Positions 601-51,700 of a DNA stretch of 64,000 nt are shown piece after piece. The stretch is taken from the NCBI GenBank assembly GCA_044892505.1, contig CM097882.1, positions 60,574,001 to 60,638,000 of the forward strand, written 5' to 3'. The position numbers and the translations under genes were made by a program. This DNA comes from Schmidtea nova. Its lineage: Eukaryota. Every line of letters begins with the position of its first letter. The stretch's first letter is position 1. Under the pieces are notes generated by a model, which saw only the letters and a list, made by a program, of their open reading frames with translations, did no database searches and was not told the origin of the DNA.

Positions 601-681
601 TTTTTAAGAAAGAAACGTTCATTATTTAATTTACATATTACTTTCCAATTTAATTATTGAGTCGATCTTAATTATATATAG

Positions 682-3091: not shown

Positions 3092-3565
3092 GTGAGATTT
3101 CAGAGTAAAAAATTCTGTGAATATATGTGGATACATTATCCGGATCATTTAGAAAACAATATGGGTTCGCATATTGTGAGAATGTTTTTCCAGTTTGCAT
3201 TCGATGTGTATGTAGGATTGGAAGGAAAGGTTTATTCTTCAAAATTAGTTGTCATTTCTACACCGATGCAGGATAACAACTATTTAGAAAAATTAAACGA
3301 CCTAATTAAACGTTTTCTCATGAATCCACAAATCGATAAGTTAATCGCAAATGATATTGAATATCCTCATTCTTCAGTCAATGGAATTTTATTATCTCCA
3401 AATGATTTAGATAATGCCATTCCGTTGTTTCATCATTCCATAACACTTACATCAATGCTCGAAGTCGTACTTAATAACATTGAATTGTATTGTCAAAAAG
3501 AAAATCTATGCATTAATGGTTATGTTTTACTGTTATCGAATGACAATAAAAACGCTTTGAATATG
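3092..3565 (+). CDS. Orphan open frame of 158 codons, truncated by an N gap
   Basis: 158 stop-free codons in AT-rich DNA, up to the gap at 3566. The track start is a TTG codon, so the true start is uncertain. No motif recognised. Confidence 0.35.
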
Positions 3566-13200: not shown

Positions 13201-16180
13201 AATCATCTTCTTCAGGAACATTAATTTCATTCGGCAATGATGGCACCAACGATAATGACTGTATAAGCATTGGACCGAGCCTTTCATGTTTATAAATATG
13301 GCTATTTTCGAAACTAATAGAAGGGTTTAAATATCCGGCTATTAAAGCATTATTAATTATTTGAGGTGTGATTTTATCCCATGATTTTTTAACCCAACAA
13401 GCAACTTCCTCGAACGTGGGCTTTTTAAAATTACCTCTAATATTCCGTTCAGCTCTTCGCTCGATATATTCGTTGATTTCATTTTTTAGTTGATCTTTAA
13501 ATGGTTTGTTCACACATATATCCAATGATTGAAGATAGCTAGTAGTTCCAGAGGGTATCATTATCTGATTAATATTGCGGATATTTAAATATTCTTTCAT
13601 TTTACTTGCTCTATGCGTACTCACCGAATCCCATATTAAGAGCTCCTTTTTATTGCCTCGTTTAATTATTGGCAGATTGATATCGATATATTTTTTCAAT
13701 ATTTCTACTGTACTCCAAGCCTTTTCAGAATTAACCATATAAATCCCGTTTCGCATGTTTATACTTTCATTTTTGCCTTTGTTGATAATAAAAGGTGGTA
13801 GTTTTTCGCCATTTAATCGAATTCCCAGAATGCAAGTTATCCGAAAACTTTCATATCCGGTAGAAGGAATTGTAATTGAATTGGTTCCCCGCCGTTCCAA
13901 AGTAGTTTGTGTATTTAGTCCATAATAAATTGCAGTTTCATCTACAGCTATACAAAAATTTGGGTCATAGGAAGACAAATCCATTAAGTCAACATAATTT
14001 TTAAAATTAATCGCCCTGCTTATCGTTTCAGCATCAGTTAATTTGAAAAGCGTTGTGGATCTTCTAATGCTTATTTCATGTCTCTTCATAAATCCATCCA
14101 ACCAATGACTTGAAGCACTAAAGTTTTGGATGCAACACTCTTTTGCTAATTCTACGGCATATTGAATCACATCATTTCTTTTCACAACAAGATGTGCAGA
14201 CCTTTTGTCTACGAACCAAGTAAAAATTTCATCCTCTAATTCTCCAATTACAGGCTTGCGACCTGCACCCACCCGTCGTTTTGCTTGTAAATCGAGACTT
14301 AAATTTGCGATACCGATTTCATTCTTCCACCTCCGCACCATTCTTATATCCAACCCATGCCTTTTACATACATTGCTCAAATTGCTATTTATGGCCTCTT
14401 CCAGTATAGATGTTTTATATGCATGTGTATAGGTCTTTCTTGGCATTGCTTTGGGTCCGGAAATTAAAAATTATAATATAATTTGTATTAATGATAATCT
14501 ATATTTTTAAATATTGCATAGGGCTTATATTGAGGATAGGGCTTTTATTGAAAAATTTACAAAATCAGTAGGAGGGCTACAAATACGGATAGGGCTTCAA
14601 ATAGGGGAAACACGGTATTAACTTTTTGAGGTCAAATTTTATTTTTGAAATTCAAACAGTCTAGTCGAAATTAATTGTCGAAAAAAAATTATAATTAACG
14701 GGATTGAATATTGAATGTTTTAATTTTGTTATTTTAAAGTTTAAATTAAAAATTCACTGGTTTTATAATTAAGTATGTCCAATCAAATAGTCGGCTCATT
14801 GGTGGACCTGTTACTAGGACTAGGTCTGTCAACATTGGACGGAAAATGATTAAATCGAAAAATATAATTAACAACAATGCACAGAAAATATGACAAGCCC
14901 TAACCCTAACCCACTTAATATTTTTAAAATTATTGTCTATTGAACTATTTAAAACTTTATTTATCTATTTTTGAGAATATTTCATTATTATATTTGAATT
15001 AGTTTGATAGTGTTTGTTATTATAATAATGTATTTTGCAAATCGAATATTTTTTTTCATTATTCTTAAAGAATTTTTATATTAAAACCTAACTAGTTTTG
15101 TATTGAAAAATTAATAATGAAAAATTATTTTTATAATAATAATTAATTTCCATTTCACTTTAAATTCAAATAGTCTAGTCGAAATTAATTATCCTTAAGT
15201 AATAAATGTATAACTGTGAAAATATTTTAGAATTAAATTATAACTAATTATAAATAAATAAATTATTTTTGTAATTATATTTTAATCCTATTTTAGTAGT
15301 TAAATAAATGTATAACTGTGAAAATATTTTAGAATTAAATTATAACTAATTATAAATAAATAAATTATTTTTGTAATTATATTTTAATCCTATTTTAGTA
15401 GTTCTTAATTTGAATATGGTATTTGATCTGTAAAATATTTATGATTCCAATGCGGCTCTGGGATTTAAAACACTGAAATATATTTTAATTTTCGTACATA
15501 AAGAAAATATTATAATTTCTCTAAAATGACTTAAACTTTTAAAATTTGTCTTTGAGTGAAATGATCTTTATGACTTATATCTACTCGAGGGTCTCTCAAA
15601 TGAGATTTCTGTGCGCTTTATGACATTGTGGTATGGTTATTGATATATCATACATGGATTGGAATTGCATACATTCACTATAGTAGACAATAATAGAGTG
15701 ACGACACCATTTAGTTTATACTTTACTGAAATTTCTCTATTTCTGCGAAAAAAAGATTTTAAAAAATTATACAAAACTTACTTTAACATTGTTTCTAAGA
15801 TAGCTCATGAATAATTCTACAACAATGACTATAAATGTTTGGGAGAATGGAGTGATTTATGATTTACTAATTCATCAGGAAGTCAATAGAGTAATATTAG
15901 GTTCATTAAGTTTGCATTGTCGTTGGCAATGAAATATTATTAGTTTTACAAAAAGTTCCTCTTTCAGTTCCTATACAGCTCCTTTTAGTAGTCTTACAAA
16001 AATTAGATTGAAGTTGGTAAGAAATATAATCATTGAAAAGCCGATGAATGGTTTTAAATAGGTAAAAGATAGATTCGCATATTTCACCTTTGAAATGTTA
16101 GAGAAACAAAACAATAAACAAGGTTTTGCATTTGAGGAAGACTTTTTGTGAGGGTCCAAGATGCTTGGCATTCGCGTGAA

Positions 16181-16238
<58 letters not shown>

Positions 16239-19200
16239 AACACTATTTTTAAAAATATATTTTTGCAAAATATTTTGACAACTCAACTGTCATCTTCAAT
16301 CAATAAACAAATTCAATAAAATAAAAATTGATCAAATTTATACGTTTTTTAGTGATTACATCATCGCATGTGCACAATCCAATAAAACTTTTATTAACAG
16401 TAGTAAAATTAATTAAAATATCTCAAGATGCAAGTAGACAAGCCCTGAGATAGTTTCAATGTTGCCCAGGCCGAAAAACCTTTTGGTGACCCAAACCCTC
16501 TATTTATTTTAAAATTTAAAAGAATTCACGTAAAAGATATTACGTAAGAGAGATATAAAATAACAAGAAGTAAAAATTATTTTAAAATGCCTTGCGCACT
16601 TTAGAATTGACAAATTCTTTAAAAAAATTTGAAAATCAATTTTTTGTGCATAATCACAATTTATATTTAGGATTGACAAAGACTTTAGTCGTTCCTGAGA
16701 TATTCTCGATCTGTTAAAATATTTCATTCCTTTCAAGGTACTACAGCTTCTTTATGCGCAAGCAACTGAAACAGGTAAACTCAAAAATATTCAAAAATAT
16801 TCTAATAATACCAAGCTATATCGATGATAACAGAACACACTCGAAGGTAGCTAAATATTGCTTAATAGAATAAAGTTCACCACACGCATGTGGTTATGTA
16901 ATTCTGCTTTTTCTACAGCAGCCTTTATACTAGATAAAGAGTTTGCCAAAATCTTTACTGCTTCGATTCTTGCAGACAATCTCATTGTCGATATGGAATG
17001 AAGTGAAAATTTTACAACTTTTTTCAAGATCTTTCATCTCTGTGGACTGCTGCTAAAGAAATTGTACATGTTTCCACACTGTCGACTGACCCTGTGATCT
17101 CCGCAACTAGAAAGAAATACAGTTAGAATTATGTTGTAGTAAAACTGCTGGTACACCATTGTATTGTCCTTCCATATTGGCGCCGTTATCATACGACTTT
17201 CCAATACAGAAATTAAAATCAATTTCTAATTATTTTAATAGTTCTAGAGTTCGTTCAGCGATTTCAAATACTTTCTTTGCGTAAGAGAGTCAGCAATAAT
17301 AAATCGCTCCTCAATCGAATATTTAATATCGCCAAACCAGTTTAAATACCGCATAACTCGACTGGTTTGTCCTTCATGTGAACAATAGGCTGTTGTGTTA
17401 ACGATTATGGAAAGATATTTAGAATTCTTAATCTCTTCAAGAATATTGTTATGGACAAAGGATCCACAAATTTCAATAAATTCATTCTGAATAACTGAGG
17501 ATAGAAAATGAACTTGTAAATGCTTTCTATTTCTTGTGATTTGCGAATTTTCGTGACATAATTGTATAATATAGGGTCGTATACAGTAGCGTAACTATGG
17601 GCCCGCAGGGCCCGCAACTGCGGGGGGGGGGGCAGGTAAAAGGGGCCCATTTTCAAACCTGAAAAAGAAAGGAATATCTTTACAAAATTGCCGTGGGCAG
17701 GGATACGATGGTGCCAGTGTAATGTCAGGTGTTTATGGAGGTGTTCAAAAACGTATTAGTGATGAACAACCAGCTGCGATATATATTCACTGCGCTGCAC
17801 ATAACCTTAATCTCGTTGTAAACGATGCTGTTAATGGAGTTCCGGAAGTTGCTAATTTTTTCACTGTTCTACAAGATGTATATTAATTTTTCGGGCTTAG
17901 CATTAACAGATGGGATATGCTTAGCAGTGTAACTGGAGAATCAACAGTGACATTAAAGAAACTTTACCCGACTCGATGAGCTGGACGAGCACAAAGTTTG
18001 CATGGTATGAAAATTAACTATTTTAATACCTTGAAGCTATTGACGACAATTAATCTAACATCGCGCAAAAAAGAAGAAAAGGATGAATCTTTAAGACTTA
18101 GGAAATCCATCGAACATTTTGAATTTGTTTTCATGCTCTTTATGTTTTCTAAAATACTTGGAGCAATAGACGTAGCCTCTAAATATCTACAAAACAAGAA
18201 CACAGATTTGTTTATTGCAACACAACATCTTGAAAGTGCATTGGAGACGACTACAAATTACAGACTGAATTTCGACGAAGCTAAAAAAGAAGCAGTTGCA
18301 GTTGCTTGCAAGTGGGGTGTTGAAGTAAAATATAAAGACAAAAGAGTTAGAAAAGTAAAGAAACATTTTGGTGAGTTAACCGATGATCAGAGATTGACTG
18401 ACCCAGAAAACACATTTCGAGTTAATATTTTTAACCGTGTGTTAGATATTGTGAACTCACAATTTAAAACTAGATTCCAAGGAATGCATGACATTGTAAG
18501 CATTTTTTCGGTACTTTTTCCGGCAACTCTTCTCGCAGAGGATGATAACAACATTGTCAAAGCTGCTAAGTCATTTCAGGAAAAATATCCCGGCGATTTC
18601 TCACCAGAATTTCCGCTTCAGTTGTTGTCTTTCAGAATGTCAATGAACAACGAAATAAAAAAAATTACAACAGTTAAGCAACTGGCAGACTTACTAATTG
18701 TGCATTACACCTCTATTTCATCTTCATATCTGGACGTGGTAACTGCTTTAATTATGTTTTTGACATTGCCAGTCACAGTGGCTACAGCAGAAAGGTCATT
18801 TTCGAAACTTAAGTTCATCAAAAATTATCTCCGCAATTCGATGGGTCAAGAACGCCTTAGTGGCTTAGCCTTGTTGAGCATTGAAGCCTCGCGGGCAAAA
18901 GTTATGGATGTTGACCAGCTCATTGACCGATTTGCAGAGATAAAGAGTCGTCGCAAGGACTTGTCTTAGAATACTTATCTGTACTGTACTAAATACAAAA
19001 CTGTTCTTGATTTATGATTTCGTAACATTGAATAAAACAATATTCAGTAACATTTCATTTATAACATTTAATCAATTTTAATGCAAATCGAAAACAATTT
19101 TTAGTTGTGGCATAAGATTACAAATTAATAATAAAATAAAATATCATAAATTAAAATCATTAAAATGTTTGCCTCAAAAGTGAGTCGATAATTTGAAACA

Positions 19201-22200
19201 TAAAATTGTCTATCAGATTGTCATTGGCTGTATGGAGGGGGGCCCATTTTGAAAATCTTGCAGGGGCCCCAGAATATGAAGTTACGCCACTGGTCGTATA
19301 TACTAAGTAATTCTACGATTCCCAGAAAATCTCTATTGTGAGCATCTCCAATACGTTTGCTTGAACTAGAAATGTTAAACCTTGCCCATTTAAAAAATAT
19401 ATCACTTCGAAAATTCGTGAAGAATTTGTTCCCAATTGCCGGCTTCATTGATTATATGTTTCAAGACTAAAGACCTTAATGTTGTTTTTGACGATGCATT
19501 ATTAATTTGCAAATGAACATAATTCTCCTTTCATGACTCGGTATGCGCTCTTTCAATTTTCTCCAACATCTTTGAATATTCCAACTTGCTGGACTACCGA
19601 GAGCAGATACACACAATTTAGCCTTATTAAGAAAACATTGTGCACAAAATAAAGACAGTCTTTGCTTGCTTCAACACAAAAAGTCTCTTTAACATGACTC
19701 ACCATTAGGTAAGAGGCTTTTGAGAAAACGATACGGAAACTTAATATTTTCTACATCTGACGAGATATCGAAATTTGAAATTTTAAGCAAAGGTTCCATT
19801 TGCTTTGTATTATGTTTATTAAGATGTGCGATGTCATCGATTGGACTAGTAGTCGCATTTTCTACATTTTATTTGATAAATTAAGATGATCATACGGGCT
19901 ATCTATACCAACTGTTCCATCATCTGTTTGTGATACCGTTGGAATATTATCCAGTTCATCCACATTTGTAAGCTCCATATTTGAAGCTGATATAGTATTC
20001 ACAGATGCAGTTTCTGAAGAACTAATTGGAATCAAAATGTTGTCAACAATTTCATTATTATCAGGTACTGATTCTTTTTCTTTTACTTTGCGAAAAAAAG
20101 ATGAAGTCGGCGTCGATTTCACTCTAATTCTGCTTTCTTTTGCCTTTTTTCCACCCGCTTTCATAAGTTCTTTTCATTTTATTAATAAAAAGGGACAAAA
20201 ATGTCAAAATATTTTAAACTAATATAGGAAAACGATCTATTTTAAACAATTAACTTATTTAAAATCTATAAATAGAAGAATTATAAAAAAACTAAGAACT
20301 TCTATAAATATAAAAAAGATTAGAAATAAATGAAATATAGAAAATGGAGATTTCTTGGTAGCAGCATTAATTAAATATTAAATAATTAATAAATAACAAA
20401 ATAACCTTTAATGCCAAATATTTTATTAGGTGAATCTTTTAATAAAAAGTTTTGTAGCAAAGGCTTATTTTGTTATTTATTAATTATTTAATAAATTAAA
20501 TATAAAAATATTAATATAAGGAAAATATTATGCAAAATTACAAAAGATATATTAAAACTAGAATAATTAGAATTTTTAAATTGGAACACGAATAAAAAAA
20601 GTATTTTTTATCTATATTATATATATAAATGAAAAAGAAATCAGAGGTGAACAAACTANNNNNNNNNNNNNNNNNNNNNNNNNNNNNNNNNNNNNNNNNN
20701 NNNNNNNNNNNNNNNNNNNNNNNNNNNNNNNNNNNNNNNNNNNNNNNNNNNNNNNNNNNNNNNNNNNNNNNNNNNNNNNNNNNNNNNNNNNNNNNNNNNN
20801 NNNNNNNNNNNNNNNNNNNNNNNNNNNNNNNNNNNNNNNNNNNNNNNNTAATTTAATACATTTGGAAAAATATATAAACGAATCATGTTAAAACAAAAGG
20901 CTAGAATATTGGAAACTAAACAAATAGTATATTGTTAACTTATTATAATTTACAATTATTGTCAGATATCAAAAGGCATTGTATGGGTATTAGGAATTAT
21001 TTAACACTTATTATTTAATTACATTCACGTTGTCGTTATTCTGAATTTATGTTTTGACAATATTATAACCATTTATTTTATGATAATNNNNNNNNNNNNN
21101 NNNNNNNNNNNNNNNNNNNNNNNNNNNNNNNNNNNNNNNNNNNNNNNNNNNNNNNNNNNNNNNNNNNNNNNNNNNNNNNNNNNNNNNNNNNNNNNNNNNN
21201 NNNNNNNNNNNNNNNNNNNNNNNNNNNNNNNNNNNNNNNNNNNNNNNNNNNNNNNNNNNNNNNNNNNNNNNNNNNNNNNNNNNNNNNNNNNNNNNNNNNN
21301 NNNNNNNNNNNNNNNNNNNNNNNNNNNNNNNNNNNNNNNNNNNNNNNNNNNNNNNNNNNNNNNNNNNNNNNNNNNNNNNNNNNNNNNNNNNNNNNNNNNN
21401 NNNNNNNNNNNNNNNNNNNNNNNNTTTATTAAATGAAATATTCGATCTTAAAAAGATCCTCCAATACGAAATTCTTTCCAATTGACTTCCCACTTCTTTC
21501 TGGATATTTTCTTTCTCCTGAATTCTAATTTAATGTTGATTATTAAAACAAATGAAAATTTCTTCTTGAGATATATTAAATAAAATTAAAATTTCTCAAA
21601 AATTATTTGATAATTTAAATTTTTTTATTTATTAATTTTTAGTAATTAGAGTGTTCTTTTTTTAAAAAATTTAAAAAATCACATAAATAGTGAAAGTCTT
21701 CTAATTATAAAAATAAGAACATTTTTAAATAAAAACATTTTAAAAAATTAAAAAAAACTACTTCACTAAACCAAATAAAAATAACTCTTTCATTAAAAAG
21801 CTCTTTTACTGAATGGTCCTTCGTTTCCCAATTCTTTCTGACAAATTGAGGAAAGTTTGGTGATGATACGATTTCAAGAAACAGATAAAAAAGATGATTT
21901 GGATTATTTACTATATATTAATTCAAAAATAAAAATGAAGTTAAAAATTAACAATAGCATAAATTTAAATAATAAAGAGTAAATTGCATAAATATATTTC
22001 TTCACAATGCATTTCGACAGATTATCATAAACTGTCATCTTCAAGTTTCCGAGTTTAAAGGTGTAAGTTTACAATATGCAATGATTATGAATTCGCGTGG
22101 GTCAAATAAATAATATCAAACAAATAAAATATGTACAAAAATTAAAAATAGAAGTTATAATAACCTGATAAGATATATGAATTATTACAAATTTATTATA

Positions 22201-26767: not shown

Positions 26768-29700
26768 TGTTACGGACGTACGTACAACGGTAATTATATA
26801 TGTTGATTGTTAATTTTTTGTAATGCAGTAACAGAATTGTAAAAATAATTAAATAGAAATAGTATTTAATTTTCAATTTTAAATAGATTTAAATACTATA
26901 ATAAAATTATCAATTAGTATAATAAATTTGATATAAATAATAAAGTTATAAATTGGCTTGACTGTAAATTTTGTATTTTAAGAATGATAGGAAATTAAAA
27001 TATAAAATATTTATTGAATGCTTGTGTATGAATATTTCATATTAATTATTAAATCATGCTTGCAAAAATATCCTCAAGTATAAAAAAGAAATTGTTTGAA
27101 TAATATCAGAAATTTGTGCTGTGTTTAAAAATATAGTTATTTTTTGAAATTATGGGTGTTCTTAATTTAAGAAACCAAAGAAATAATATGCCGACCATAA
27201 TGGCCAATTTTATCAAGGCACCAGAAAATCTCGAGATGAGAACCGATATCGAAGAATTTATCAAAGAAACAGAAAGATTTTTCGAATTAATGTCGATAGC
27301 TGAGGACTTCAAAGGAAGATTTGTTAAAGCTGTTTTATCAACGAATGCAATTAAGAAATCTAACTGACGAGAAACAAAATTTTAAAGAAAGAATGAGAGG
27401 AACCTTCTTAAGTCCAATGAATCTGATGAAAGATCAAAGTCAAGCGCTAGAATATAAACAAGGATATAATTCCACGGTTGATTTATGCGAAAAAATTGAG
27501 AAATCATTAAAACGAATTCTGAAATACAAATTTAATGAAGAAGAGCTACAAAATTTTCTCATATTCAATGAACTGGGAAACCAAGATTTGAAAAAATATT
27601 AGAGACTAAATGATTAATAATCAGTGGACGAAATGAAAAAGAGAATTAAAAACACGAAAAGTTAATTAAATAATTAAATCAAAACAGTGACTCAATGGCA
27701 GTTATGAGAACTGAAACAAGATACACGGATATGGTGAAAAAAGCTGTAAATATCCCAGCAAGACCAATGTCACAAAGATGCAACGACTAGAAAAAATACA
27801 TTTAACGAGCCAAGACAGATTCGAGAATATCCGAACAAGCAATATAATTTTAAAAATCAAGCAATTCAGAGAAATGAGAGATCAAATTTAAAATGCTGCG
27901 CATGTCATGAAGAGGGTCATAGGAGAGTAGAACGCCCGAATGTGAAATGTTATCATTGTCTCAAGTCAGGAAATTTCAAGCACCAGTGATTTCAATTCAG
28001 AAATAATTTCAGAGATGTTAGAGAAAATGAACAAGAAAACATACAAGGTAAAAAATACGCAAATGGATATGTTCCATCTCGATAGCAGGTGATAGGAACA
28101 CTGCAATAAGGATGAGTATATTGAATGGGGAATTGTATGATTATTGTCTGGATGATGATTGTTTGCATGTATTAAATTATAAAAAATATGAATATGTAAT
28201 TAATAGTGATAATTGTAAATGCGTCTGTATAATAATTTAATTGGGATTAGATGATTTTGGAGATGTTGTATAGTATGTTTGTAATATTAATTATGTAAAT
28301 TTTAATATCAATAATTACCATTTTGGTAAGACTATAGATGGAAATTTCTTTAAACAAGTACACAATATTTCGGCACAGCCTTTATCAAGTGTGTATTGAG
28401 AAAATTTGAGTCCAATTATTTGAAGCACTAATGTTATGTGAGTAAAACAAATTTAATAACGCATGAAATTTTAACATCAGGAAGATCTATTGTGATAAAT
28501 CCAAGGCACCAACCAGCCCATTTAATAGGAAATATTGATGAACAAATAAAAAAGATGGAAAAATTCGGAATTATAAAATAATGTAAGTCGCCATGGAACA
28601 CACCTTTAGTGTGTATAAAGAAAAAAAATAGAAACGATATAAGAATTTGTCTAGATTTTAGAGAGCTAAACAATGTCACAGGACGACCAATATTTTCAAT
28701 TCCGAATACAAATAAATTATTAGATACATTGAAAGATGCAAAATATTTCAACACAATTAATTTAGGGAATGTATACTACCAAGTGGAGCTCGATGAATAA
28801 TCAAGACTGAAGACAGCATTTTTTTACTAAAAACAGACAATATTGCTTTAATCGGATGCTATTTGGGATAGCAGCAGCTCCACAACATTTCAAAAATTAT
28901 TGAACATGGTATTAAGTGAACTTAATTGGTAAATAGCAAAAGTGTATTTGGACGACATTCTTATATTTTCAAAAGAATTAAAAGAACACTACGAAAATAT
29001 CGAAAAGGTTTTCAAGACAAAAGAACAAGCGGGACTAAAAGTAAGTACGTCTAAATGTCAATTTTTGAAAGAGGAAGTGAAGATCTTGGGACATATAATC
29101 AGCAAAGATGGCGTAAAAACCGAGGAAGAAAGAATTAAAGCAGTAAAAGAATTCGAAGGACCCATGCGTGTTAAAAACTTGAGGAAATTTTAGTGTTAAT
29201 CAATTACTAGAAAATTTATAAAATATTATGCAGAAGATTCAAAACATCTAGAAAAGTGGTGTGGAAGCCAAATGAAAAGGTTGATTTGGACAACCGAATG
29301 TAAAAGTGCATTTTCGAAACTTAAAGATAAGCTGATTAATGCACCAATATTAAAATTTCCTGATTCTTCAAAAACTGTCATAATGGATAAGGAGGCTAGC
29401 TTCGATCGTATTGTCTCCCTTTTATCACGAACAGATAAATCTGGAAATGGAAATGTTATTACTTATGGATCACATTCCATGTCGAAACATGAGGTGGCCC
29501 ATTGCAAAACAAGAAAAGAACTTTTAGCAATCTATTATTTCCAAAACCATTTTAAACATTGTTTTTATAGGAAAAGATTTATATTACGCACGGACCGTAA
29601 AGCCATAACGTATTTGATGAAGACAAAGAAAGTTATCACTACTTACTTCCAGACATTAATCAATTATTTAAAAAGTTTGGAAATAGAATTTCAATTTAGG

Positions 29701-29897
29701 AAAGCAGAAGAACATTGCAATGCAGATGCATTGTCAAGAAGTAAATGTATGATGTGCGTTCAATGTCAAACCATCTATGTTAATCTAAAGACGAAGCTTT
29801 TGGCAATAATGACAGAAAACCCAGAACAAGAATGGCAAATGAATTCAAAAGAAAAAACTGAAATTTTAATTAAAAACCAATATGATAATGAATTCAG
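26768..29897 (+). mobile_element. Degenerate Ty3/gypsy retrotransposon: 5' LTR, gag, RT, RNase H; truncated before the integrase core, no 3' LTR
   Basis: Putative LTR from TGTTACGG (26768) to about 27188, then a decayed PBS tgccgacc. Gag FIKAPENLE...EEFIKETERFFEL with CCHC relics; RT SPWNTPLVCIKKK...IRICLDFRELN and YLDDILIFS; RNase H (D)ASFDRI...TRKELLAIYYF...RTDRKAI...NADALSR. Clearly related to the 48790-53501 element. Confidence 0.88.
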
Positions 29898-30533
29898 ATA
29901 AGGTGTGTTTGGTGGGGCATTATGGTTGTTGTACGTGTCTGGCTGTAAAGGATTGCCTGTATACCAAAACGCTAATCCATCTCCAAATAATTTGCTCCTG
30001 TCTCCGTGAACTTTGAAATTCAAATGAATTTCACAATCACGCATTACATTTGGATATTCATTGAATTTGTTATTTGGAAATGGTATATGAAACGATGAGA
30101 AATTGTAAATTTTCTGTTGTTCTTGATTCTTGACCCAAATGCCACCAGTTATGTCAAGTGTATAGCCGCCATAGTCCCAATATTGCCGAGCGAGATGAGT
30201 AACTGCTAAAGAGGACATAGCGAAAACCAGGACAATGTAACGAGAATGTTGATATCGCAAAAAGTACATGATGCAATAGCTAATGATTGGTGGAATAAAC
30301 AGATGCATTATTTGATGGTCAAAACAAAAGAATGCCAAAGTAAATCCTCCTAAAAATGCAAACCGATGCCTTTGTTCAGCACTGATATTTTTGATGCTGT
30401 ATTTCGTCTGGAACTGCCAACCCATCAATGAGGCAGCAAACATGCAGAGTACAAAATTAAATTGATCAACGTGTATTCTAAATTGTGATGATAGTGGCTC
30501 AAAAAATCTAACTCTGGCACAAAATTTCAACAT
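29775..30533 (-). CDS. Chimeric 252-aa ORF: MBOAT1/2-type lysophospholipid acyltransferase N-terminus fused to VIP36/LMAN2-type L-lectin fragments
   Basis: Codons 1-130 (30533-30144: FEPLS...VDQFNFVLC...RH...GFTLAFFCF...ISYCIM...YWDYGGYTLDITG) follow the MBOAT1/2 N-terminus. Then come GIW, a 24-codon insert, NEYPNVMRDCEIHLNFKVHGDRSKLFGDGLAFWYTGNPLQP and DTYNNHN..PY, which follow VIP36/LMAN2. The last about 40 codons are antisense gypsy pol. Coding status is unproven. Confidence 0.8.
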   Translation of the reverse strand: MLKFCARVRFFEPLSSQFRIHVDQFNFVLCMFAASLMGWQFQTKYSIKNISAEQRHRFAFLGGFTLAFFCFDHQIMHLFIPPIISYCIMYFLRYQHSRYIVLVFAMSSLAVTHLARQYWDYGGYTLDITGGIWVKNQEQQKIYNFSSFHIPFPNNKFNEYPNVMRDCEIHLNFKVHGDRSKLFGDGLAFWYTGNPLQPDTYNNHNAPPNTPYLNSLSYWFLIKISVFSFEFICHSCSGFSVIIAKSFVFRLT

Positions 30534-37700: not shown

Positions 37701-38714
37701 TAAATTTACAAAAGAATGAGTTAGATGTGTTTTCACTTTCAAAAGATTTCTGGACCACGGCCAACATAGAATCAAGCAAAAATCTTTTTATTGAACACTT
37801 GGATGGTTTGGTGCTGCATTTTACAAATTATTTCAAAGACCTTGATTTCGCAAAGTTTTTGTGGGTACAGAATCCATTTATCGACAATGAAGATGACGAA
37901 TTTGAGCTGTCAACAATCGAAAGAGAAAAATTGATAGAATTATCATGCGATAGTTTACTAAAACAAAAGTTTCAAAATGAAACGATAATTCAATTTTGAA
38001 TGAATCTTAGTGGAGAGTATGAATCTCTGTATTGCAAAGCAATGCAAGTGCTTCTACCATTTGTAACGTCTTATTTATACGAAACGGGCTTGTCGGCCCT
38101 GGCTGCAATGAAAACCAAATATCGAGCCAGGTTAATAGTCGAAAAAGAGTTATGAGCGGCAATCTCCACATTACCTCCAAGATTTGATAAACTTTGTGCC
38201 AATAGACAACAACAACCTTCGCATTAAATTTTGATGTGTTAGATGTAGTTTAACCCGGGGTCGATCGCGTGGGGTCTTTAAAGGCCCAATACATTATTTG
38301 GCGAAATTTTATATATTTATTATATATGTATATGGTTTTTTATGATTTTCTGTTATGTGGGTATATATTTAACGATTATAAAGCATATTTTGTATTTCGT
38401 TATTTATTTTGACATGGAAATTATAACTTATTAGAAAACAGACCATTTCATCATTTTTAGCAATTCGAGTTTAAAATTACCAAATAAAAAATAACAAAAT
38501 TTAAACTCTTTTACATATTAACAAGAAATGTCAAATTCCAGGCATTCTTTACATTTAAACATCAAGATACTTATAACTATACATCTAAAAATAGGCAGCT
38601 ACTGAAACACACAAACCTCTAACTTAAATAATTAAAAAGTTATGTCGGTTTTTCTAAGTTCCAGGCCTTTAAAGACCCCACGCGACCGACGATGTAAGGA
38701 AAATGGGCGCTACC

Positions 38715-41700
38715 TGTTATATATTTAATAATGATTTGTTTTAATATTCTATATTAAGACATTCATCATTATTCAAATTGAATAAAAACTTTTAGTATTA
38801 ATTGCTTTTTATCAGTTCAATTTTATTCAATTTGAATCATCATGAATCTGAAAATCTTTCAAAAAGCTCTTCCGGAAAATGCCTCTGAAAATGAATTTCT
38901 CCAATGGAAGCGTGTGTTCGAGACATACATCAGAAGACTGGTATTATCAGACAACGACAGTTTAGAAGCTCTTCTCTAGTTAGTGCCATAAAACATTTTC
39001 ATCACCTTGGAACAGTGCAGCGATTACAAAGAAGCAATACAAAAGTTAATAGCAAGGCATGTCAAGAGGTCCTCATCAACTCTCATGCGGTTCAAGATCA
39101 GAACAATGATGCAAGAGAACAATGAAACAATCGAAGACTTTACAACAAGACTCACAGTTGCAGTTCACAAGTGTCCAACTCCAGCTCTCTCTGCAGAAGA
39201 ACATCATAATTTAATGATAAGCGACGCATTAGTCTTTGGAATTAGCTCAAATGAAATTCGACGAAGACTCTTGGAGTTAGAAAACGTCAGCCTCCAAGTC
39301 ATGGTTACACGTGCGATGTCTCTAGAATCTGCAATAAAAGATTCTAACTATCTTCGACAGGATCAGCAGTCAGAGCCAACTGTAGACAGATCAGTCTATA
39401 CAACATCAGCAATGACTACTAGCTGCCAATGGTGTGGTAAATCTAAACATTCGCGATCTAGTTGCCCAGCAAGAAACTCTGTTTGCAACAAATGTCAGAA
39501 GAAAGGTCACTGGAGTCCGGTATGTTTAGCTAAAAAGATAGCGTCTATCTCTACTGAAGAAACAAACATGGACGTTGACGGACCGATTCAGAGTTGCTCT
39601 ATTTCTAGATTAGCAACAATCAATGCCCAAAATTCTTTAGTTGAGGCTTTTCTCGATGGAAACTCAGTTCTAACATTAATTGATACGGGATCAGATTTGT
39701 CCTTTGTGTCAGAAGAATTCCTCAATAGTAAGAATCTAACCTTTAATCACAAAGAAGTAAAACAGGTTCTCCTTGCGAATAAATCGATATCCTCAACTTT
39801 AGGTAACTACTATGGAAAGTTAATGTTGGCAAACAAGGTCTACGAGGCACATTTCCAAGTCTCCAAATCACTGGTCACTAAAGTGATAATTGGAATGGAC
39901 ATCCTAAAAAGACACTCGAGAATTAATCTAGAACTTTGTGGCAATAGACATCCGATCACACTATCTCTAGCTCTCAAGACAATGACATGTGACACGTATC
40001 CGCTCTTGCCAGGAGTTGACATAAGTAAAATCAAACCAATCGCTATGCCATCACGACGGTCCTCACAAAATTCAGAGTTTATCAGCCAAGAAATATCGAG
40101 ACTCCTCTCCGACAGAATCATTCAAGAAAGCCAAAGTCCTTGGCAAGCACAGTGCTTCGCCATCAACTAGAACAGCAAACAACGGCTCGTAATAGATTAC
40201 TCAAATACAATCAATCGATACACTAATCTTGACTCAAACCCAATGCCTAGAATTGACGATCTGCTCTTTAAAATAGCAAAGAACACAATTTTCAGTAAGG
40301 TAGGCCTCAAGTCAGCATATCATCAGGTCCAAATTCAACCATCAGACTATCAACTAACTGCTTTCGAAGCACAGGGTAAATTATATGAATTTACCAAACT
40401 ACCTTTCGGTTGCACCAACGCAGTCCCAATTTTTCAGAGAATCATCGACAAATTCATCCAAGACAACAATCTTCAGTCAACGTTTACTTATCTCGATGAC
40501 ATAATAATTGGTGGTAAAAATAAAGAAGAGCACGATCAAAACCTTAAAGAATTTCTAAAGGCCTCTAAAGTGAAAAATCTACAAATAAACGAAAGCAAAA
40601 GTAAGTTTTCTACAACGTCTATATCATTTCTAGGACACGTAATTGAAAACCAATCAATAAGGCCAGATCCGGACCGTTTCAAGGCTCTCATGGACCTTCC
40701 AATTCCAGCGTCTACAAAAGAAATGGATCGTTTAATAGGTTTTTTTGCATATTACGCAAAATGGATCCCACGATGCTCAGAATACACGAGAATACTAACT
40801 GATTCTCGTAAAGAACTCACGTCAAGCAACACACTGCCAAATGAATGCATCGAAACAATACATTTACTGAAGACCAAATTACAAACTGCTTCACTACATT
40901 CCCCAACTCAAGATCAACCTTTAGATATTGAAACCGATGCATCCGACTATGCATTGGGCGGAGTATTGAGTTAGAACGGCCGACCGATTGCATTCTTTTC
41001 TCGTTTACTCTCAAAGTCAGAAAGAAATCACTCCATCATTGAAAAAGAGGCCGCGGCAATCGTCGAATGTACCCAAAAATGGCGTAGCCTCTTACATTCG
41101 GTACCTTTCTTTAATATTCTTACAGATCAGAAGTCAGTTTCGTTAATATTCAATCGGCAAAAATTATCCAAAACTAAGAATGAAAAGATCGCACGATGGA
41201 GAATTGAATTATCAGATCTGAGATTCAACATAAAATACAAACCAGGTCCCGACAACATACCAGCTGACGCATTATCTAGATGTAGTTCAATAATTAGTTC
41301 TAACTCTTTAAAGTTACTTCATGGAAGTTTATGTCATCCCGGTATCACTCGTATGTATCATTACTGCCGAGCGAAGAATCTACCATACTCCATCCAAGAC
41401 ATTAAAAACGTTATTGGAAACTGTGAAACATGCAAACAGATAAAACCAAGATATTTCAAACCTCCAAGTAGAAGCCTAATCTCATCAATGAAACCCTGGG
41501 ATAGAATTTCAATCGACTTTGTGGGACCTCTACAAAGCACAACATCTAATCGTTTCTTGCTCGTCGTTGTCGACGAATATTCCAGGTACCCTTTTGCCTT
41601 TCCTTGTGCTAACGTCGATTCTGACACCGTAATAAAACACATGTTAAGTTTATTTACCTTGTTTGGTTCACCTTCGCCCGTACATAGCGACAGAGGAGCA

Positions 41701-42462
41701 CAATTCGAAAGCAGACAATTCAATGACTTTTTAATTAAACACGGAGTGGCGAAGACACGTACAACGCCTTATCAACCTCAAGGTAACGGTCAATGCGAAA
41801 GAATGAATGGAATTCTATTGAAAACGATAAACTTAGCCCTAAAGGAAAACAATATGAGCAAGGAGCATTGGGAAAAAGTATTGGACGTATCCCTTTCATC
41901 AATAAGATCACTGCTGTGCGTCTCTACTAATTCGACACCTCACGGTCGAATGTTTAAATTTGATCGAGCGTCCGTAATTGGATGTGATTTACCAGAATTT
42001 CTACGAAATACTGATCAAAACATCCTACTAAAACGCCACATTCGCTATAAAAATGATCCACTTGTCGATGAAGTCAAACTGATCGAGACAATATCGCCAT
42101 ACTATGCAAGAGTACAACACAGAGATGGAAGGACAGACACAGTATCGACGAGTCACCTTGAACCATGTTCAAATAGCTCAGCTGATACGACCTGTACAGA
42201 GCTTGAAAGTGGGAAAGACACCCAAGAAACGTTCGGGTATTCCAAGACTGCATTTGAAGACAGTTTGTCGTCACAGAATCAGCAGGAAGCGAATCGACTA
42301 CCCGATCTTGAAGACAAGTAAAAGTACCGTCACGATTCTTAACCTAGAGGGGAAGAATGTTATATATTTAATAATGATTTGTTTTAATATTCTATATTAA
42401 GACATTCATCATTATTCAAATTGAATAAAAACTTTAAGTATTAGTTGCTTTTTATCAGTTCA
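38715..42462 (+). mobile_element. Complete compact Ty3/gypsy (Mag-like) LTR retrotransposon, 3748 bp, with 105-bp LTRs and 5-bp TSD
   Basis: LTRs 38715-38819 and 42358-42462 (TG...CA, 2 mismatches in 105 bp), TSD ctacc (38710-38714, 42463-42467), and polypurine tract (PPT) agaggggaagaa (42346-42357). Confidence 0.97.
38842..42321 (+). pseudogene. Single-frame gag-pol (gag with twin CCHC, protease, RT, RNase H, integrase) with four premature stops and no frameshift
   Basis: ATG at 38842 and all track ORFs (39007, 40243, 41353) share one frame. Motifs: CQWCGKSKHSRSSCPARNSVCNKCQKKGHWSPVC, LIDTGS, YLDDIII, ETDASDYALGGVL, H-x4-HPGITRM...CETC, ISIDFVGPL, HSDRGAQF, NGQCER. Stops: TAG 38977, TAA 38989, TAG 40168, TAG 40972. 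Confidence 0.93.
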
Positions 42463-43031
42463 CTACCGACGTAGGGTTAATTAGTAATTTAATATACAAA
42501 TAAATATACATGTTCGTATGTTATAGCAAAACCTTGTTTTTATTCTGTTAATTGTAGTTTTAATTTTTTTTGTAATAAAGTTATTTTTGTTTAAAAAGTG
42601 TTTATATTATTATATATATATTAAAAAAATATGGGGAGGCGCCAAGAAAAAAATTTTTTTGGGGGAGGCTCGGTAGCATAAAGGTTGGAAACCGCTGGTC
42701 TAATGTGATATAGATGGAAAATACTCAACAACATTTACAAAGATAAAATTTCAGAGACTTAACAAGATAAAGAATTATATTGGAAAAACTAGTAAGTTCG
42801 AGGCCAAATGAATTGTGTAGGAAAGTCACCAAAATATTATTCTTTGAACGATTTTCTCTAAAGATTTCTTTTAATATAAAATTTTGGAGTCATATTCTAC
42901 ATCTTTAAAGTTCCAAAATAGTTGGAAAAACTGATTTAATTTATTTGTATTGGGTTCAGATTTATTTAAATATAAACAAAAATAAGTAAACAAAATGCAT
43001 ATATAATTTAAAACACAACAAACAGACTTAC

Positions 43032-43376: not shown

Positions 43377-43555
43377 ATTAAATAAATTAATTAATAAGTA
43401 ACAAAATAAGCCTTTGCTGCAATAACAATTTTATTAGGTGAGAAAATTTTCGGTCATAAAATATAAACCGAAATATAATCGAAAGTTTTCTCACTTAAAT
43501 AAATTGTTATTGCAGCAAAGGCTTATTTTGTTACTTATTTATTAATTTATTTAAT
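43377..43555. repeat. Near-perfect 179-bp palindrome (fold-back MITE)
   Basis: The 55-bp outer arms differ at one position. Pairing extends imperfectly to about 77 bp around a short loop. Confidence 0.85.
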
Positions 43556-47308: not shown

Positions 47309-48193
47309 ATGTCACTAAGCGATTATCCAATTATTGAAGTTATTCAACAATCTGAGAAGGGGTCAACGAGTCTTGCTGTAAATAATTCCCCTTTCAACCA
47401 AGATCATCCTTTAGTTATTATTAAAACTATTAAAAAAGAACAAACTGCGTATTTTATCTTTAATAATAAGATCACAGATATTCCAACAGAAGCGCAATTC
47501 TATAATCTAATAAAAGATGAAAATATTTCTCCAAAGTTTTTACGACATTTTGTAGATACTGACCACGTACTAGTTATCGAGTACTTGGGTGGTAGATGGC
47601 TAGACCTTTTAGATTTTACACTTACAAAATTACCAGAAGAATCAGTTGTCAAAAAAATCTTTATTAAAATTGTAAAAGCGCTCTACATATTGGCTAGGAA
47701 GAATATTTATCATCTCGATATCAAACCAGAAAATATTATGATAAATCAAACGACTTTAGAAATAAAAATTATTGACTATGAAACTGCAATTCAGAAAAGA
47801 AGTTTATTTTCAGTTACCAGTAGTCAAATAGTCGGAACAGAACTTTATATGGGACCAGAACGGTTTTCTGGTAAATATTATGATGTCAGAAAAAGTATTG
47901 TATATACTTTAGGAGTCGTATTGTACACATGCATTGAAAGAGTAGATGCATCCGACGAAGGTTTCAGATTTAAAACATCATCAGAATTAGCTAAAATGTT
48001 TATATTGGAATGCATTGAAACCAATCCGAATAAAAGACCGAATTTTAAATATTTATTAGATCACCAATATTTTTCAAATGTTCATGGTTTGAAATCTACA
48101 GTGAATTTCCCTTCAAATTATACGAGATATTCAAAGAAAAATATTTTTTTGCGTGCATTTTTATTTGCGTGTGCATGTATTTTGCGGTTTTAA
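47309..48193 (+). CDS. Intronless divergent Ser/Thr protein kinase, PIM-like (294 aa)
   Basis: VIIK (subdomain II Lys), TE (alphaC Glu), LVIEY hinge, HLDIKPENIMI, IKIIDYE, GTELYMGPE, SIVYTLGVVLY (no Asp in subdomain IX, as in PIM kinases), KRP. Confidence 0.85.
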   Translation: MSLSDYPIIEVIQQSEKGSTSLAVNNSPFNQDHPLVIIKTIKKEQTAYFIFNNKITDIPTEAQFYNLIKDENISPKFLRHFVDTDHVLVIEYLGGRWLDLLDFTLTKLPEESVVKKIFIKIVKALYILARKNIYHLDIKPENIMINQTTLEIKIIDYETAIQKRSLFSVTSSQIVGTELYMGPERFSGKYYDVRKSIVYTLGVVLYTCIERVDASDEGFRFKTSSELAKMFILECIETNPNKRPNFKYLLDHQYFSNVHGLKSTVNFPSNYTRYSKKNIFLRAFLFACACILRF

Positions 48194-48789: not shown

Positions 48790-51700
48790 TATTAGGTTGA
48801 TTATTAATTTTCTTATTCACAAATTAAAAACACGCTTTCGTTCAATAAAATATCTATTATTAAAACAAATATTTTTCTTTTTTAATTATCTCGGAGAACA
48901 TTAATATAAATAATACTTTGAGCAATTTCAACATTCATACACAACATATACATACTGTAACACCCATACTGGATTTTATAATATATAATTAATTTATCAA
49001 TTTCATCTCGCATCCCCCTCCCTTTTATTTTCAATTATTTGCTTATATGGTATCGCTTAAGCCATTCGATATTTCTAATCAAGATTTTATCATTTGGCAT
49101 TTTTATTTTATATCTCCTATCATGGTTCTTTTCTATTACTTCACATGGACCATCAAACCTATCGTCGTATTTCGTTCTTACGTCCTTTTTAACTAAAACT
49201 AGATCCCCAATCGAGAACTCGAGGTTTATTCTTGTCGATTTGTTATATATCAATTTGTCTTCATTTAAGCGTAATTTTGAATCTAGAATCTCTCTTCTTT
49301 TGTTTTGTTCTTTCATATAATCAATCACTTCCATTTTGCCAAAAACTGTTGAAGGCCATTCTCTGTAAATTTTCTTTCCAAAAACTACTGCTGGACTGAA
49401 TCCAATTGTGTTTTGAATTGTTGAATTTAACATGAACTCTACTTCTGGTAATTTATCGGCTCAATTACTGTTATGCATTTTATCTTTTATTGATATTTGA
49501 ATAGCATCTCTAATAGTTCTAAATTGTCTTTCAATCACGCCGTTTGCCGAATGATGATATGGGCTACTATATTTTATCTCCATTTTATGTGTTCCTGTAA
49601 GTGTTTTTATTACGTTAGATTCAAACGTTTTAGCTTTATCAAAATATATCAATTTTGGTGCTCCAAATCTTAAAATCCAATTATCTTTAATTACCTTTGC
49701 AGTGGTATTTTCATCTTGTCTTGCTATAGCATTCAAAGAAATATATCTACTAAATTGATCAATTATTGCAAGAATGTATTTTTTCCATTAACTGTCGTTT
49801 TGAATGATCCACAAATGTCTACAAATACAACTTCAAATAATTCTGGTATTCTTTGTTTCATTATCATTTCTTTCGTGCGTGTGGTAACAGATTTTTTTTG
49901 ACATTGTTCACAACTTTGAACAACATTCTTAATATTTTCCAATTTATTTTCCATATCAAACTTCTGTGATATATAATCATTTACCTTCCTCACTCCAGTA
50001 TGACAAAGTGTACGATGCGTATATTCTATAAAATTCTTTACGTTGTCATTTGGTATCCATATTTTGTCTTTCATTGTTTTTATAACCTCATCTTCAACTT
50101 TTAACCCTAAATTTTTATCGTAGTTAATCTGTTTCTTTATAATTAATAGATCTTTTGAATTCTTTTGCCATGTTGAACCATTGTCTCCTAGCATGAGAGC
50201 TAATATTCTTCTCTTTAATCTCCCTTTCTTTGGTTCTTCGTGAATGGTCTGACATTGTACGCAAATCACGCAGTCTTTCCTTGACAATGCATCAGCATTA
50301 CTATGTAGGTCACCCTTTCTGTATTCCAATTTCATATCTAAACTACTTAAATGATTTATCCATGTTTGGAAATGTGGTGTTATTGGTTTTTTAGTTTTTA
50401 TCATAAAAGTTATAGCTTTGTGGTCTGTTCTAATCCGAAATCGTTTACCATATAAATATTGCTTAAAATGCAATGTAAAATAGTAAATCGCAAGCTGTTC
50501 TTTTCTAGTAATGCAGTAACCTAATTCGTGGGTGTTCATCGCATGAGAGCCATAAGCTATCACTCTTTCATTTCCACTAGCATCTAACTGTGATAATATC
50601 GCTCCTATCCTATCAAAACTGGCATCGGTATCTAAAATGAATTCTTTCGAAAAATCAGGAAATGCCGAAATCGGGGATAACATTAATTTTTCTTTAAAGT
50701 TTTGAAAAGCTATTTCACATTCGTCTGTTCAAATCAATTTCGTTTGGTTGCTTCCGCAAAGTTTTTCTAGATCTTTTGAATATTTCGAATAATTTTCTAT
50801 GAATCTTCTATAATAATTAGTTAAACCAAGGAAGCTCCTTAACTTCTTCAAACATTTCGGTCTCTCGTATTGTTTAATTGCCTCCATCTGCTATCATCTG
50901 TTCTTATACCATTTTTGTTAATAATGTGTCATAAAAATTTGATTTCTTCTTTCATGAAGTTGCACTTATTCATACTCAATTTTAATCCAGCTTCTTTTAT
51001 TCGATTTAGAACATTTCTAACTCTCATTACGTGCTCTTCTTTTGTATATATCATCTAGATATGCAACAGCTTCTTTCCAGTTTAAGGTTCCTGATACCCT
51101 GTTCATTAATTTCTGGAAAGTTGCAGGTGCTGCTGCGATTCCAAAGGGCATACGATTAAAGCAATATTGTTCGTTCTTTGTTGAGAATGCGGTTTTTATC
51201 TTTGAAAGTTCATCTAATTCTACTTGATAAAAAGCATTACCTAAATCTAAAGTTGTAAAATAAATATCCATCATTTCTTCGGTGCTTGGTATTTGAAAAA
51301 TCGATCTTTCGGTTACTAAATTTAATTCCCGAAAATCTAAACAGATGCGAATATCATCTTTACCTTTCTTTTTTACACATACAAGAGGAGAGTTCCATGC
51401 AGATTCACATTTCTCGATAATTCCATACTTTTCCATTTATTTTATATTTTGATCTATTTGCTCTATCAAATGTATTGGTTGGCGACGTGGATTTATTACC
51501 ACCAGTGGTCCTTCAGAATTAATGTTATGTTTAACTAACGTTGTTAAACCAATATCCCATTTATGTTTCATAAATTTTGGATCGAATTCTTTCAAAATAT
51601 TTTGAATTTCATGATCTAACGTTAGAACATTATTTTGATTAGTATTTTCTTCAATGTAAGCAATCTCATCTTTATTTTTATTTTTCCGTAAAAATATCTT

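Follow-up and report, generated by a model that had tools for sequence, protein, structure and literature searches.

The 64,000-nucleotide stretch of Schmidtea nova DNA analysed here (assembly GCA_044892505.1, contig CM097882.1, positions 60,574,001 to 60,638,000; hereafter the window) contains a compact LTR retrotransposon with a single gag-PR-RT-RH-IN reading frame, the features of which are listed below. The terminal repeats, target-site duplication, polypurine tract and domain order identify it as a Ty3/gypsy (Metaviridae) type element. The same domain order was found by Pfam analysis of three intact relatives, and the best solved relative is the Ty3 Gag-Pol structure 7q5b (E = 1.6e-70). 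No chromodomain was detected in the window copy, in the three intact relatives or among the precomputed domains of the 240 listed protein relatives. The copy in the window is inactive, since its reading frame is interrupted by stop codons, and it therefore says nothing about function.

Features of the LTR retrotransposon (positions are those of the window)
Position	Strand	Feature	Basis
38710..38714	+	Target-site duplication, left copy (ctacc)	Same five bases at 42463-42467
38715..38819	+	5' LTR, 105 nt, TG..CA	Direct repeat with 42358-42462; 2 differences in 105 positions
38771..38787	+	LTR arm, candidate self-primer, 17 nt, ending on the poly(A) hexamer plus one A	Exact reverse complement of 38821-38837; homologous arm covaries with the PBS arm in relatives
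38781..38786	+	Poly(A) signal hexamer AATAAA inside the LTR arm	Read directly; AATAAA or ATTAAA at this place in 22 of 27 elements
38788..38819	+	Rest of R and U5 (no mapped boundary), loop of the predicted hairpin	32 nt between LTR arm and LTR end (33 nt between the two arms, spacer included); 20-68 nt between arms in relatives
38820..38820	+	One-base spacer (A) between the CA of the LTR and the putative primer-binding site	A in 26 and T in 1 of 27 elements
38821..38837	+	Putative primer-binding site, arm complementary to the LTR arm	Exact complementarity over 17 nt; 0 of 5000 anchored shuffles reach 17
38842..42321	+	gag-pol reading frame of 1159 codons plus stop, broken by 4 in-frame stop codons, no frameshift; gag-like 39022-39180, two CCHC knuckles 39424-39525, protease 39646-39912, reverse transcriptase 40258-40644, RNase H 40840-40971 (partial match), integrase core 41494-41778	Pfam on the open pieces; knuckles in the alignment; single-frame tblastn match to three intact relatives with 4 stops; count by translation
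42347..42357	+	Polypurine tract (gaggggaagaa), directly before the 3' LTR	Read directly; similar purine runs precede the 3' LTRs of relatives L001, L005 and L006
42358..42462	+	3' LTR; its copy of the LTR arm is at 42414-42430	Direct repeat with the 5' LTR
42463..42467	+	Target-site duplication, right copy (ctacc)	Same five bases at 38710-38714

Only 22 nt (38820-38841) separate the 5' LTR from the gag ATG, and no TGG, as expected of a tRNA-type primer site, follows the LTR. Instead, the stretch that begins one base after the terminal CA of the LTR and ends four bases before the ATG is the exact reverse complement of a stretch inside the LTR. The only other exact copy of the LTR arm in the window is that in the 3' LTR. 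With the downstream arm anchored at its true position, none of 5000 dinucleotide-preserving shuffles of the upstream 100 nt reached 17 nt, the largest value being 13, and in the whole window only 12 perfect stems of at least 12 nt have this kind of spacing. The observation made in the first-pass annotation, that a perfect 17-nt self-complementary site replaces the tRNA primer site, is confirmed with all its coordinates. The TATA-like tatattaa at 38750-38757, the AATAAA, the two CCHC knuckles, the 5-bp duplication and the lack of a chromodomain are also present as described there.

The pairing is not private to this copy. We found the same layout in 28 further distinct elements (relatives are designated by L numbers) from nematodes, flukes, snails and crustaceans, including copies with intact reading frames and near-identical LTRs in Trichinella, Paragonimus, Biomphalaria and Armadillidium. 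The arms are 9-17 nt long (median 15 over 27 of the 29 elements), the ATG follows within -1 to 37 nt, and the LTRs are very short (105-290 nt in most). Nine elements with both LTRs in the locus place the LTR end directly before the spacer and the downstream arm inside the element. Element L010 may have a TGG-type stretch between its LTR end and its arm. Copies with intact frames of 1180-1283 codons carry the hairpin, and in two of them, L094 and L095, the LTRs are 98-99% alike, which indicates recent activity. Two other relatives were uninformative: the Diaphorina copy (L003) is truncated and shows no hairpin, and the Hyalella copy (L088) has no recognisable LTRs or hairpin.

The arm sequences differ between elements but stay complementary. 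Covariation was counted on 21 relatives without the window copy, since MAFFT places the latter one column out of register owing to an extra A/T pair in its arm. In these relatives 92.0% of cells are paired against 67.2% in shuffles (reached by 0 of 500 shuffles), 15 of 16 pairs show changes on both sides, and controls in which the arms were slid give 31-52%. RNAalifold independently predicts the same 13-bp helix, and only this one. L005 and L006, from one sample, differ by a G/C swap in both arms. Within the 13 core pairs, only 1 of 267 standard pairs is G:U, and 61 cells changed on both sides against 1 on one side only. Copying of the site from the primer would give this pattern, whereas a helix kept by selection on RNA folding alone should show wobble intermediates. 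The pairing is also independent of the poly(A) hexamer: five elements lack a canonical hexamer in the arm, among them L012, with an intact 1283-codon frame, and L007, with the first 454 codons of its frame open, and all five keep 13-16 nt of perfect pairing (the mutated copy L044 counted as 16 with one mismatch).

Other proposed features were not supported. The first-pass annotation suggested a flanking U5-type stem between 38812-38819 and 38843-38851. This exists only as an interrupted match, is absent from the predicted fold of the window sequence and is at chance level in relatives, where the longest pairing between the U5 tail and the sequence after the site averages 5.87 against 5.54 in shuffles over 23 elements. 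The argument for a transcript start at 38771 based on the TATA-like motif has no support in relatives either: none of the 23 relatives examined has TATAWA within about 45 nt before its arm, and TATAWA lies within 90 nt before the 3' end of the arm in only two of 24 elements, at inconsistent distances. Nothing here, then, places the start of the RNA. Logan contigs of about element length proved to be circular permutations with 29-30-nt end overlaps, or unitig breaks, and not transcripts, and thus carry no information on the RNA start. A recurring RCC...GGT pattern just after the LTR arm could form a small hairpin, but its stem length is no better than in shuffles (4.5 against 4.25). A scan for viral contigs found nothing.

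From these analyses we propose that the element belongs to a widespread animal lineage of compact, single-frame, chromodomain-less Ty3/gypsy retrotransposons, which probably starts minus-strand DNA synthesis with its own RNA and not with a tRNA. In this view, the transcript would begin at or just before the LTR arm (38771 in this copy), and the arm would fold back over the rest of R and U5 to pair with the 13-17 nt that lie one base after the LTR. By analogy with Tf1, the RNase H of the element would cut the RNA at the 3' end of the arm, just after the poly(A) hexamer, and the new 3'-OH would be extended across the spacer and U5 up to the cut. This short strong-stop DNA would move to the R copy at the 3' end of the RNA, and plus-strand synthesis would later copy the RNA primer, so that each cycle rewrites the primer-binding site as the exact complement of the arm. 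Of this course, our sequence analyses show only the complementarity and its conservation; the formation of the fold in the RNA, the transcript start, the poly(A) site, the RNase H cut and the subsequent steps are inferred. As a side effect, also inferred, the hairpin may hide the 5' copy of the poly(A) signal, while the 3' copy has no partner and stays free. One difficulty is that, if the cut falls after the hexamer, only about 10-30 nt of R would remain for the first strand transfer, which is short.

The interpretation in the first-pass annotation is partly supported. The comparison that it had called for, of whether the complementarity is kept with compensatory changes, came out strongly positive and supports a self-complementary primer-binding site of the Tf1 kind in an element without a chromodomain. 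However, its claim of candidate self-priming outside chromoviruses is overstated as a novelty, since self-priming has already been predicted for Ty1/copia TAR elements of plants (PMC6317226). The new point would be a chromodomain-less animal Ty3/gypsy lineage, not the first case outside chromoviruses.

The strongest alternative, which we consider unlikely, is that the hairpin is a regulatory or structural RNA element only, and that reverse transcription is primed by something not yet recognised. The helix might hide the 5' poly(A) signal, as the poly(A) hairpin of some retroviruses does, or serve packaging, dimerisation or bringing the RNA ends together. In 22 of 27 elements the LTR arm ends exactly on AATAAA or ATTAAA, which hints that the helix also has, or mainly has, a role in 3'-end processing, and the downstream partner exists only at the 5' end of the RNA, as masking of the 5' signal would need; the evidence for priming, moreover, is indirect. 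On the other hand, the downstream arm occupies exactly the place that defines the LTR end, the leader is too short for another primer site, elements without a canonical hexamer keep the pairing, and the near-absence of G:U pairs fits copying better than selection on folding.

Priming by a host tRNA, tRNA fragment or other host RNA, with an incidental match to the LTR, is close to refuted. Most LTR elements use tRNAs, some use internal tRNA halves (PMC6317226), and the first six bases of the site are similar in most elements. Nevertheless, the site differs between relatives (24 distinct 12-mers in 27 elements) and always follows the element's own LTR arm, and one host RNA cannot fit sites this varied in four animal phyla. 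ARAGORN found no tRNA gene in the window; the absence of a tRNA-complementary site rests on the covariation with the LTR, which makes a scan of the host tRNA set unnecessary. Finally, a chance match in AT-rich, partly palindromic sequence (the window has about 27% G+C, the arm contains a near-palindrome, and the fold energy of the hairpin is only moderately unusual, z = -2.4) is refuted by the shuffles and the comparative data.

Priming by tRNA is treated as the rule for animal LTR elements and retroviruses, and self-priming as a peculiarity of the Tf1/sushi group. A chromodomain-less animal lineage that uses its own RNA, with over a thousand protein matches to one intact member (the hairpin itself was checked in 29 elements), would show that the trait is either older or easier to evolve than thought. 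More tentatively, a large and recently active lineage may replicate without any tRNA by means of a minimal one-helix hairpin whose primer arm is the poly(A)-signal end of R, the same stem priming reverse transcription and hiding the 5' poly(A) signal. Self-priming would then either have arisen independently of the Tf1/sushi chromoviruses or be an old state of LTR elements, as speculated in PMC3601003, and would not have been described for this lineage. The overlap of primer and poly(A) signal suggests a very economical 5' end that could be studied as a model of dual-use RNA structure. The near-absence of wobble pairs gives a sequence-only signature that separates a helix kept by copying from one kept by selection on folding. 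Annotation tools that look for tRNA-complementary sites will label these elements as lacking a primer site, but they could be recognised by a simple rule: LTR end, one base, then the complement of the poly(A)-signal stretch of the LTR.

Among characterised systems, Tf1 of Schizosaccharomyces pombe uses its first 11 RNA bases, paired to the primer-binding site and cut by RNase H (PMC7175516; PMC10085805). Tf1 and the Tf1/sushi group (Tf2, Tj1, sushi-ichi, Maggy, Skippy, Cft-1, Boty and others; PMC4600332) likewise have no tRNA site, and the bases directly after their 5' LTR are complementary to an upstream LTR stretch thought to lie at the start of the RNA. Duplex length is similar (11 nt in Tf1, 13 near-universal pairs here), and the 3' end of the duplex abuts U5. 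The present elements differ in the missing chromodomain, in the arm that usually contains the poly(A) hexamer, in the very short LTRs and minimal leader, and in their animal hosts from at least four phyla. Only one conserved helix is seen and not the three-duplex 'pretzel' that Tf1 needs, and self-priming, shown by experiment for Tf1, is only inferred here. For the Ty1/copia TAR lineage of plants (Houba, Osr-1) and the Tcn1 chromoviruses, self-priming is likewise predicted from LTR/PBS complementarity without experiment (PMC6317226), but TAR belongs to a different superfamily with a different pol order, Tcn1 elements are chromoviruses, and the hosts are plants and fungi. The poly(A) hairpin in the R region of some retroviruses also includes the AAUAAA of the 5' R region, but both of its arms lie within R, so that the stem can form at both ends of the RNA, and priming is by tRNA; here the partner lies outside the LTR and exists only at the 5' end.

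The name 'Mag-like' used in the first-pass annotation rests on shared traits and not on phylogeny. Elements of the Mag clade of Ty3/gypsy (mag of Bombyx, SURL of sea urchins, Jule of fish) have animal hosts, two CCHC knuckles in gag, 5-bp duplications, short LTRs, no env and no chromodomain, and the elements described here share these traits. No paper in the literature we searched, which lacked most subscription-journal work on these elements, describes the priming site of Mag-clade elements as self-complementary. Published Mag A LTRs also show a clear AATAAA and no conserved TATA box (PMC3601003). Of the LTR end motifs published for Mag A and Mag C (PMC3601003, Table 3), the LTR start of the window copy fits both, while L001, L005 and L006 fit only in part; the 3' ends of many relatives fit the ...YAYAACA pattern, but that of the window copy does not.

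The window holds an LTR retrotransposon whose two LTRs, each 105 nt long, start with TG, end with CA and differ at 2 of 105 positions, and whose flanks carry a 5-bp duplication, ctacc. A purine run abuts the 3' LTR. The 5' LTR is followed by a single A, by a stretch that is the exact reverse complement of a stretch inside the LTR, by four bases and then by the gag ATG. The only other exact copy of the LTR arm in the window lies in the 3' LTR, and the LTR arm ends on AATAAA plus one A. When the downstream arm was anchored where it lies and the 100 nt upstream were shuffled with dinucleotide content preserved, none of 5000 shuffles reached 17 nt, the largest value being 13. In the whole window, only 12 perfect stems of 12 nt or more have comparable spacing, and the window-wide stem scan revealed no other LTR/primer-site hairpin of this kind. 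Folding of the surrounding stretch as RNA also yielded this stem (-15.5 kcal/mol, z = -2.4), the modest z-score reflecting the A+U content. The self-complementary site described in the first-pass annotation is therefore confirmed as it was written, and proved considerably better supported than could be seen from this one sequence.

Coordinates of the element, its candidate primer site and other features of the window and of related loci
Sequence	Position	Strand	Feature
window	38715-42462		LTR retrotransposon
window	38715-38819		5' LTR
window	38771-38787		LTR arm, exact reverse complement of 38821-38837
window	38781-38786		AATAAA in the LTR arm
window	38771-38860		stretch folded as RNA
window	38788-38800		stretch directly after the LTR arm (R-C-C and G/T-rich run in relatives; columns 21-23 and about 49-56 of the alignment of relatives)
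window	38812-38819 with 38843-38851		second duplex proposed in the first-pass annotation
window	38820		spacer base (A)
window	38821-38837		downstream arm
window	38842		gag ATG
window	38842-42321		single frame of 1159 codons
window	42347-42357		purine run
window	42358-42462		3' LTR
window	708-869	+	5.8S rRNA match (Rfam RF00002)
window	13166-14446, 17998-18969, 29272-29901, 49763-50683	-, +, +, - (in that order)	other mobile-element reading frames: a Tc5/pogo-type DDE transposase, a hAT dimerisation domain, and two further RT-RNase H or integrase pieces from other LTR elements
window	20376-20404 with 20465-20493		perfect inverted repeat, arms of 29 nt, 60 nt apart
window	43393-43431 with 43501-43539		perfect inverted repeat, arms of 39 nt, 69 nt apart
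window	47309-48193	+	protein kinase reading frame of 294 codons
L001 (contig of a relative)	266-7684	-	unrelated neighbouring LTR element
L010 (relative)	1-92 and 3800-4046		region with displaced downstream arm
L010 (relative)	43-55		downstream arm

All coding pieces of the element lie in one frame. A Pfam search detected a gag-like stretch, an aspartic protease, reverse transcriptase, RNase H and an integrase core, but no chromodomain, and gag has two CCHC knuckles. Three intact relatives align to the element in a single frame without frameshifts, and the frame carries four in-frame stop codons. This copy is therefore young, judged by its LTRs, but inactive. The host is an AT-rich eukaryote (about 27% G+C).

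A protein search with the gag-protease piece gave two hits, whereas the integrase piece gave hundreds, from arthropods, nematodes and molluscs, and none of those listed has a chromodomain. The contigs behind these hits, a metagenome scan with a gag-protease alignment and look-ups of full-length relatives together yielded 95 loci, which are designated here by numbers of the form L001. Intact members have one frame of 1180-1283 codons with the order gag, protease, RT, RNase H, integrase, and the closest solved relative is Ty3 Gag-Pol. A search with one intact member returned 1089 proteins, of which the 120 listed are nearly all about 1150-1250 residues long; the lineage is large. In Diaphorina citri (GCA_024506315.3; loci L003 and L004), a 6394-bp segment holding a truncated relative of the element is repeated in tandem at 100% identity.

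An unbiased search for the longest perfect stem in the 700 nt before each gag match repeatedly recovered the same layout, in which an LTR stretch lies 20-68 nt upstream of the LTR's CA and is followed, after that CA, by one spacer base, the exact complement of the stretch, and the ATG. We count 29 distinct elements with this layout, namely the element in the window, the loci L001, L002, L005 and L006, 18 metagenome elements, Biomphalaria glabrata L087, Trichinella murrelli L089, the two Logan contigs L090 and L093, Paragonimus westermani L094 and Armadillidium vulgare L095. In nine of them both LTRs are present in the locus, which confirms that the LTR ends just before the spacer and that the downstream arm is internal. 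Over 27 elements, the perfect arms are 9-17 nt long (median 15), the spacer is A in 26 and T in 1, the arm ends on AATAAA in 10, on ATTAAA in 12 and on something else in 5, and the first ATG follows the arm at -1 to 37 nt. The anchored shuffle test gave 0 of 5000 for 20 of 23 elements. Of the other three, two have shorter perfect arms (7 and 6 of 5000), and the third, L044, has one mismatch, located in its LTR-arm hexamer. The Logan contigs of about element length (L090, L091 and L093) begin and end with the same 29-30 nt and are circular permutations of one LTR plus the internal part, as expected from collapsed LTRs or one-LTR circles in short-read assemblies.

For the covariation analysis, 21 relatives were aligned without the window, each stretch running from 20 nt ending at the 3' end of the LTR arm to 20 nt starting at the downstream arm. 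In the 16-pair helix, 92.0% of cells form standard pairs, against 67.2% (sd 1.8) in shuffles, a value reached by 0 of 500 shuffles. Fifteen of 16 pairs show changes on both sides, the covariation score is 0.629 against 0.163, and sliding the partner by 1-3 columns reduces pairing to 31-52%. Although each upstream arm was located by its pairing, its position is also fixed by the conserved hexamer and by a nearly invariant C two bases after it, and the slid controls and anchored shuffles address the selection effect. RNAalifold, to which the structure was not supplied, predicted a 13-pair helix at the same columns, with compensatory changes in twelve of its pairs. Pairing is 100% in the nine pairs nearest the LTR end and 86-95% in the next four, and falls to 52-76% beyond pair 13. 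L005 and L006, two close relatives from one sample, differ by a G/C swap that is present in both arms.

From these comparative analyses, we conclude with fair confidence that self-priming of the Tf1 kind is the best explanation. The site next to U5 is, by the logic of LTR replication established for retroviral reverse transcription, where the minus-strand primer sits, and the leader leaves no room for another site. While the complementarity and its covariation are observed directly in the sequences, priming itself, the transcript start, the RNase H cut and the length of R left for the first transfer are inferred. In the 13 core pairs, only 1 of 267 standard pairs is G:U, and cells changed on both sides outnumber cells changed on one side by 61 to 1. 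A helix kept only by selection on RNA folding should pass through wobble pairs, whereas a site rewritten each cycle by copying the primer should not; this is an inference, but it points to priming. The helix is also not there only to cover the poly(A) hexamer, since five elements lack a canonical hexamer in the arm and still keep the pairing, which is 13-16 nt and perfect in four of them and 16 nt with one mismatch in the mutated copy L044. Among these five, L012 has a complete open frame and L007 has the first 454 codons of its frame open. A shared host tRNA is excluded, as the site differs between relatives (24 distinct 12-mers in 27 elements) yet always matches the element's own LTR.

Two loci bear on the relationship between priming by tRNA and self-priming. 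In the relative L010, the downstream arm lies about 30 nt beyond the apparent LTR end, a TGG-starting stretch follows the spacer directly, and the LTR-side arm sits at the very end of the contig. This could represent an intermediate between tRNA priming and self-priming, although the contig is cut and the LTR may end elsewhere. On the contig of L001, an unrelated neighbouring LTR element has an ordinary TGG-type site right after its 5' LTR, so that both priming styles, one of them inferred, coexist in one genome.

Tf1 uses the first 11 bases of its RNA, needs a three-duplex structure, and is cut by RNase H between bases 11 and 12 (PMC7175516; PMC10085805). In contrast, only one helix is conserved here. 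The second duplex, proposed in the first-pass annotation as a flanking stem, is absent from the predicted fold, and across 23 elements such pairings are no longer than in shuffles (5.87 against 5.54). Furthermore, the arm usually contains the poly(A) hexamer, and the stem could then also hide the 5' copy of the signal while leaving the 3' copy free, which we regard as a plausible second role and not as a replacement for priming. No TATA box is conserved before the arm, so that the argument previously drawn from tatattaa for the start of R has no comparative support. Two thirds of the elements have an initiator-like run at the start of the well-paired part of the arm, but this is only a lead. 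Directly after the LTR arm most relatives have R-C-C, of which the middle C is nearly invariant, and a G/T-rich run lies further on; in about half of them the two parts can pair, but not beyond chance. This region may be the downstream element of the poly(A) site or a mark for the cut. The earlier interpretation is thus partly supported: its core, a self-complementary primer site without a tRNA and without a chromodomain, is supported by extensive covariation, whereas the flanking stem and the TATA argument are not supported.

Self-priming has been shown by experiment for Tf1, proposed for the Tf1/sushi group (PMC4600332; PMC6934838; PMC10085805), and predicted for Tcn1 chromoviruses and for the Ty1/copia TAR lineage of plants (PMC6317226), while Skipper and SM-Tcn1 lack both kinds of site (PMC5006619; PMC2864245). 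It has been speculated that hairpin priming preceded tRNA sites (PMC3601003), and the same study describes Mag LTRs as having a clear AATAAA and no conserved TATA. No paper in the literature searched, which included few of the older reports on mag, SURL and Jule and not the original ones on Tf1, links self-priming to Mag-like or other chromodomain-less animal Ty3/gypsy elements, and a prior description can therefore not be excluded. Self-priming outside chromoviruses, the candidate novelty put forward in the first-pass annotation, is as such not new, but a large animal lineage with this particular one-helix, poly(A)-overlapping design appears to be. The element belongs to Ty3/gypsy and lacks the chromodomain characteristic of chromoviruses. 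The name Mag-like fits the gag knuckles, the short LTRs, the 5-bp duplication and, in part, the published LTR end motifs, and is a provisional label that does not rest on a tree.

Outside the element, the window contains a 5.8S rRNA match (80 bits against a threshold of 42) with no large- or small-subunit rRNA hit beside it. The sequence just downstream (2-6 kb) has only about 19% G+C, and the match may be a stray or decayed rDNA fragment. The stem scan additionally revealed two long perfect inverted repeats, which may be hairpin-forming repeats or small foldback elements; the one with 39-nt arms lies about 930 nt downstream of the element. Reading frames of other mobile elements are present as well, together with an intron-free protein kinase reading frame (Pkinase, E = 6e-29) whose exact sequence was not found in the protein collection searched.
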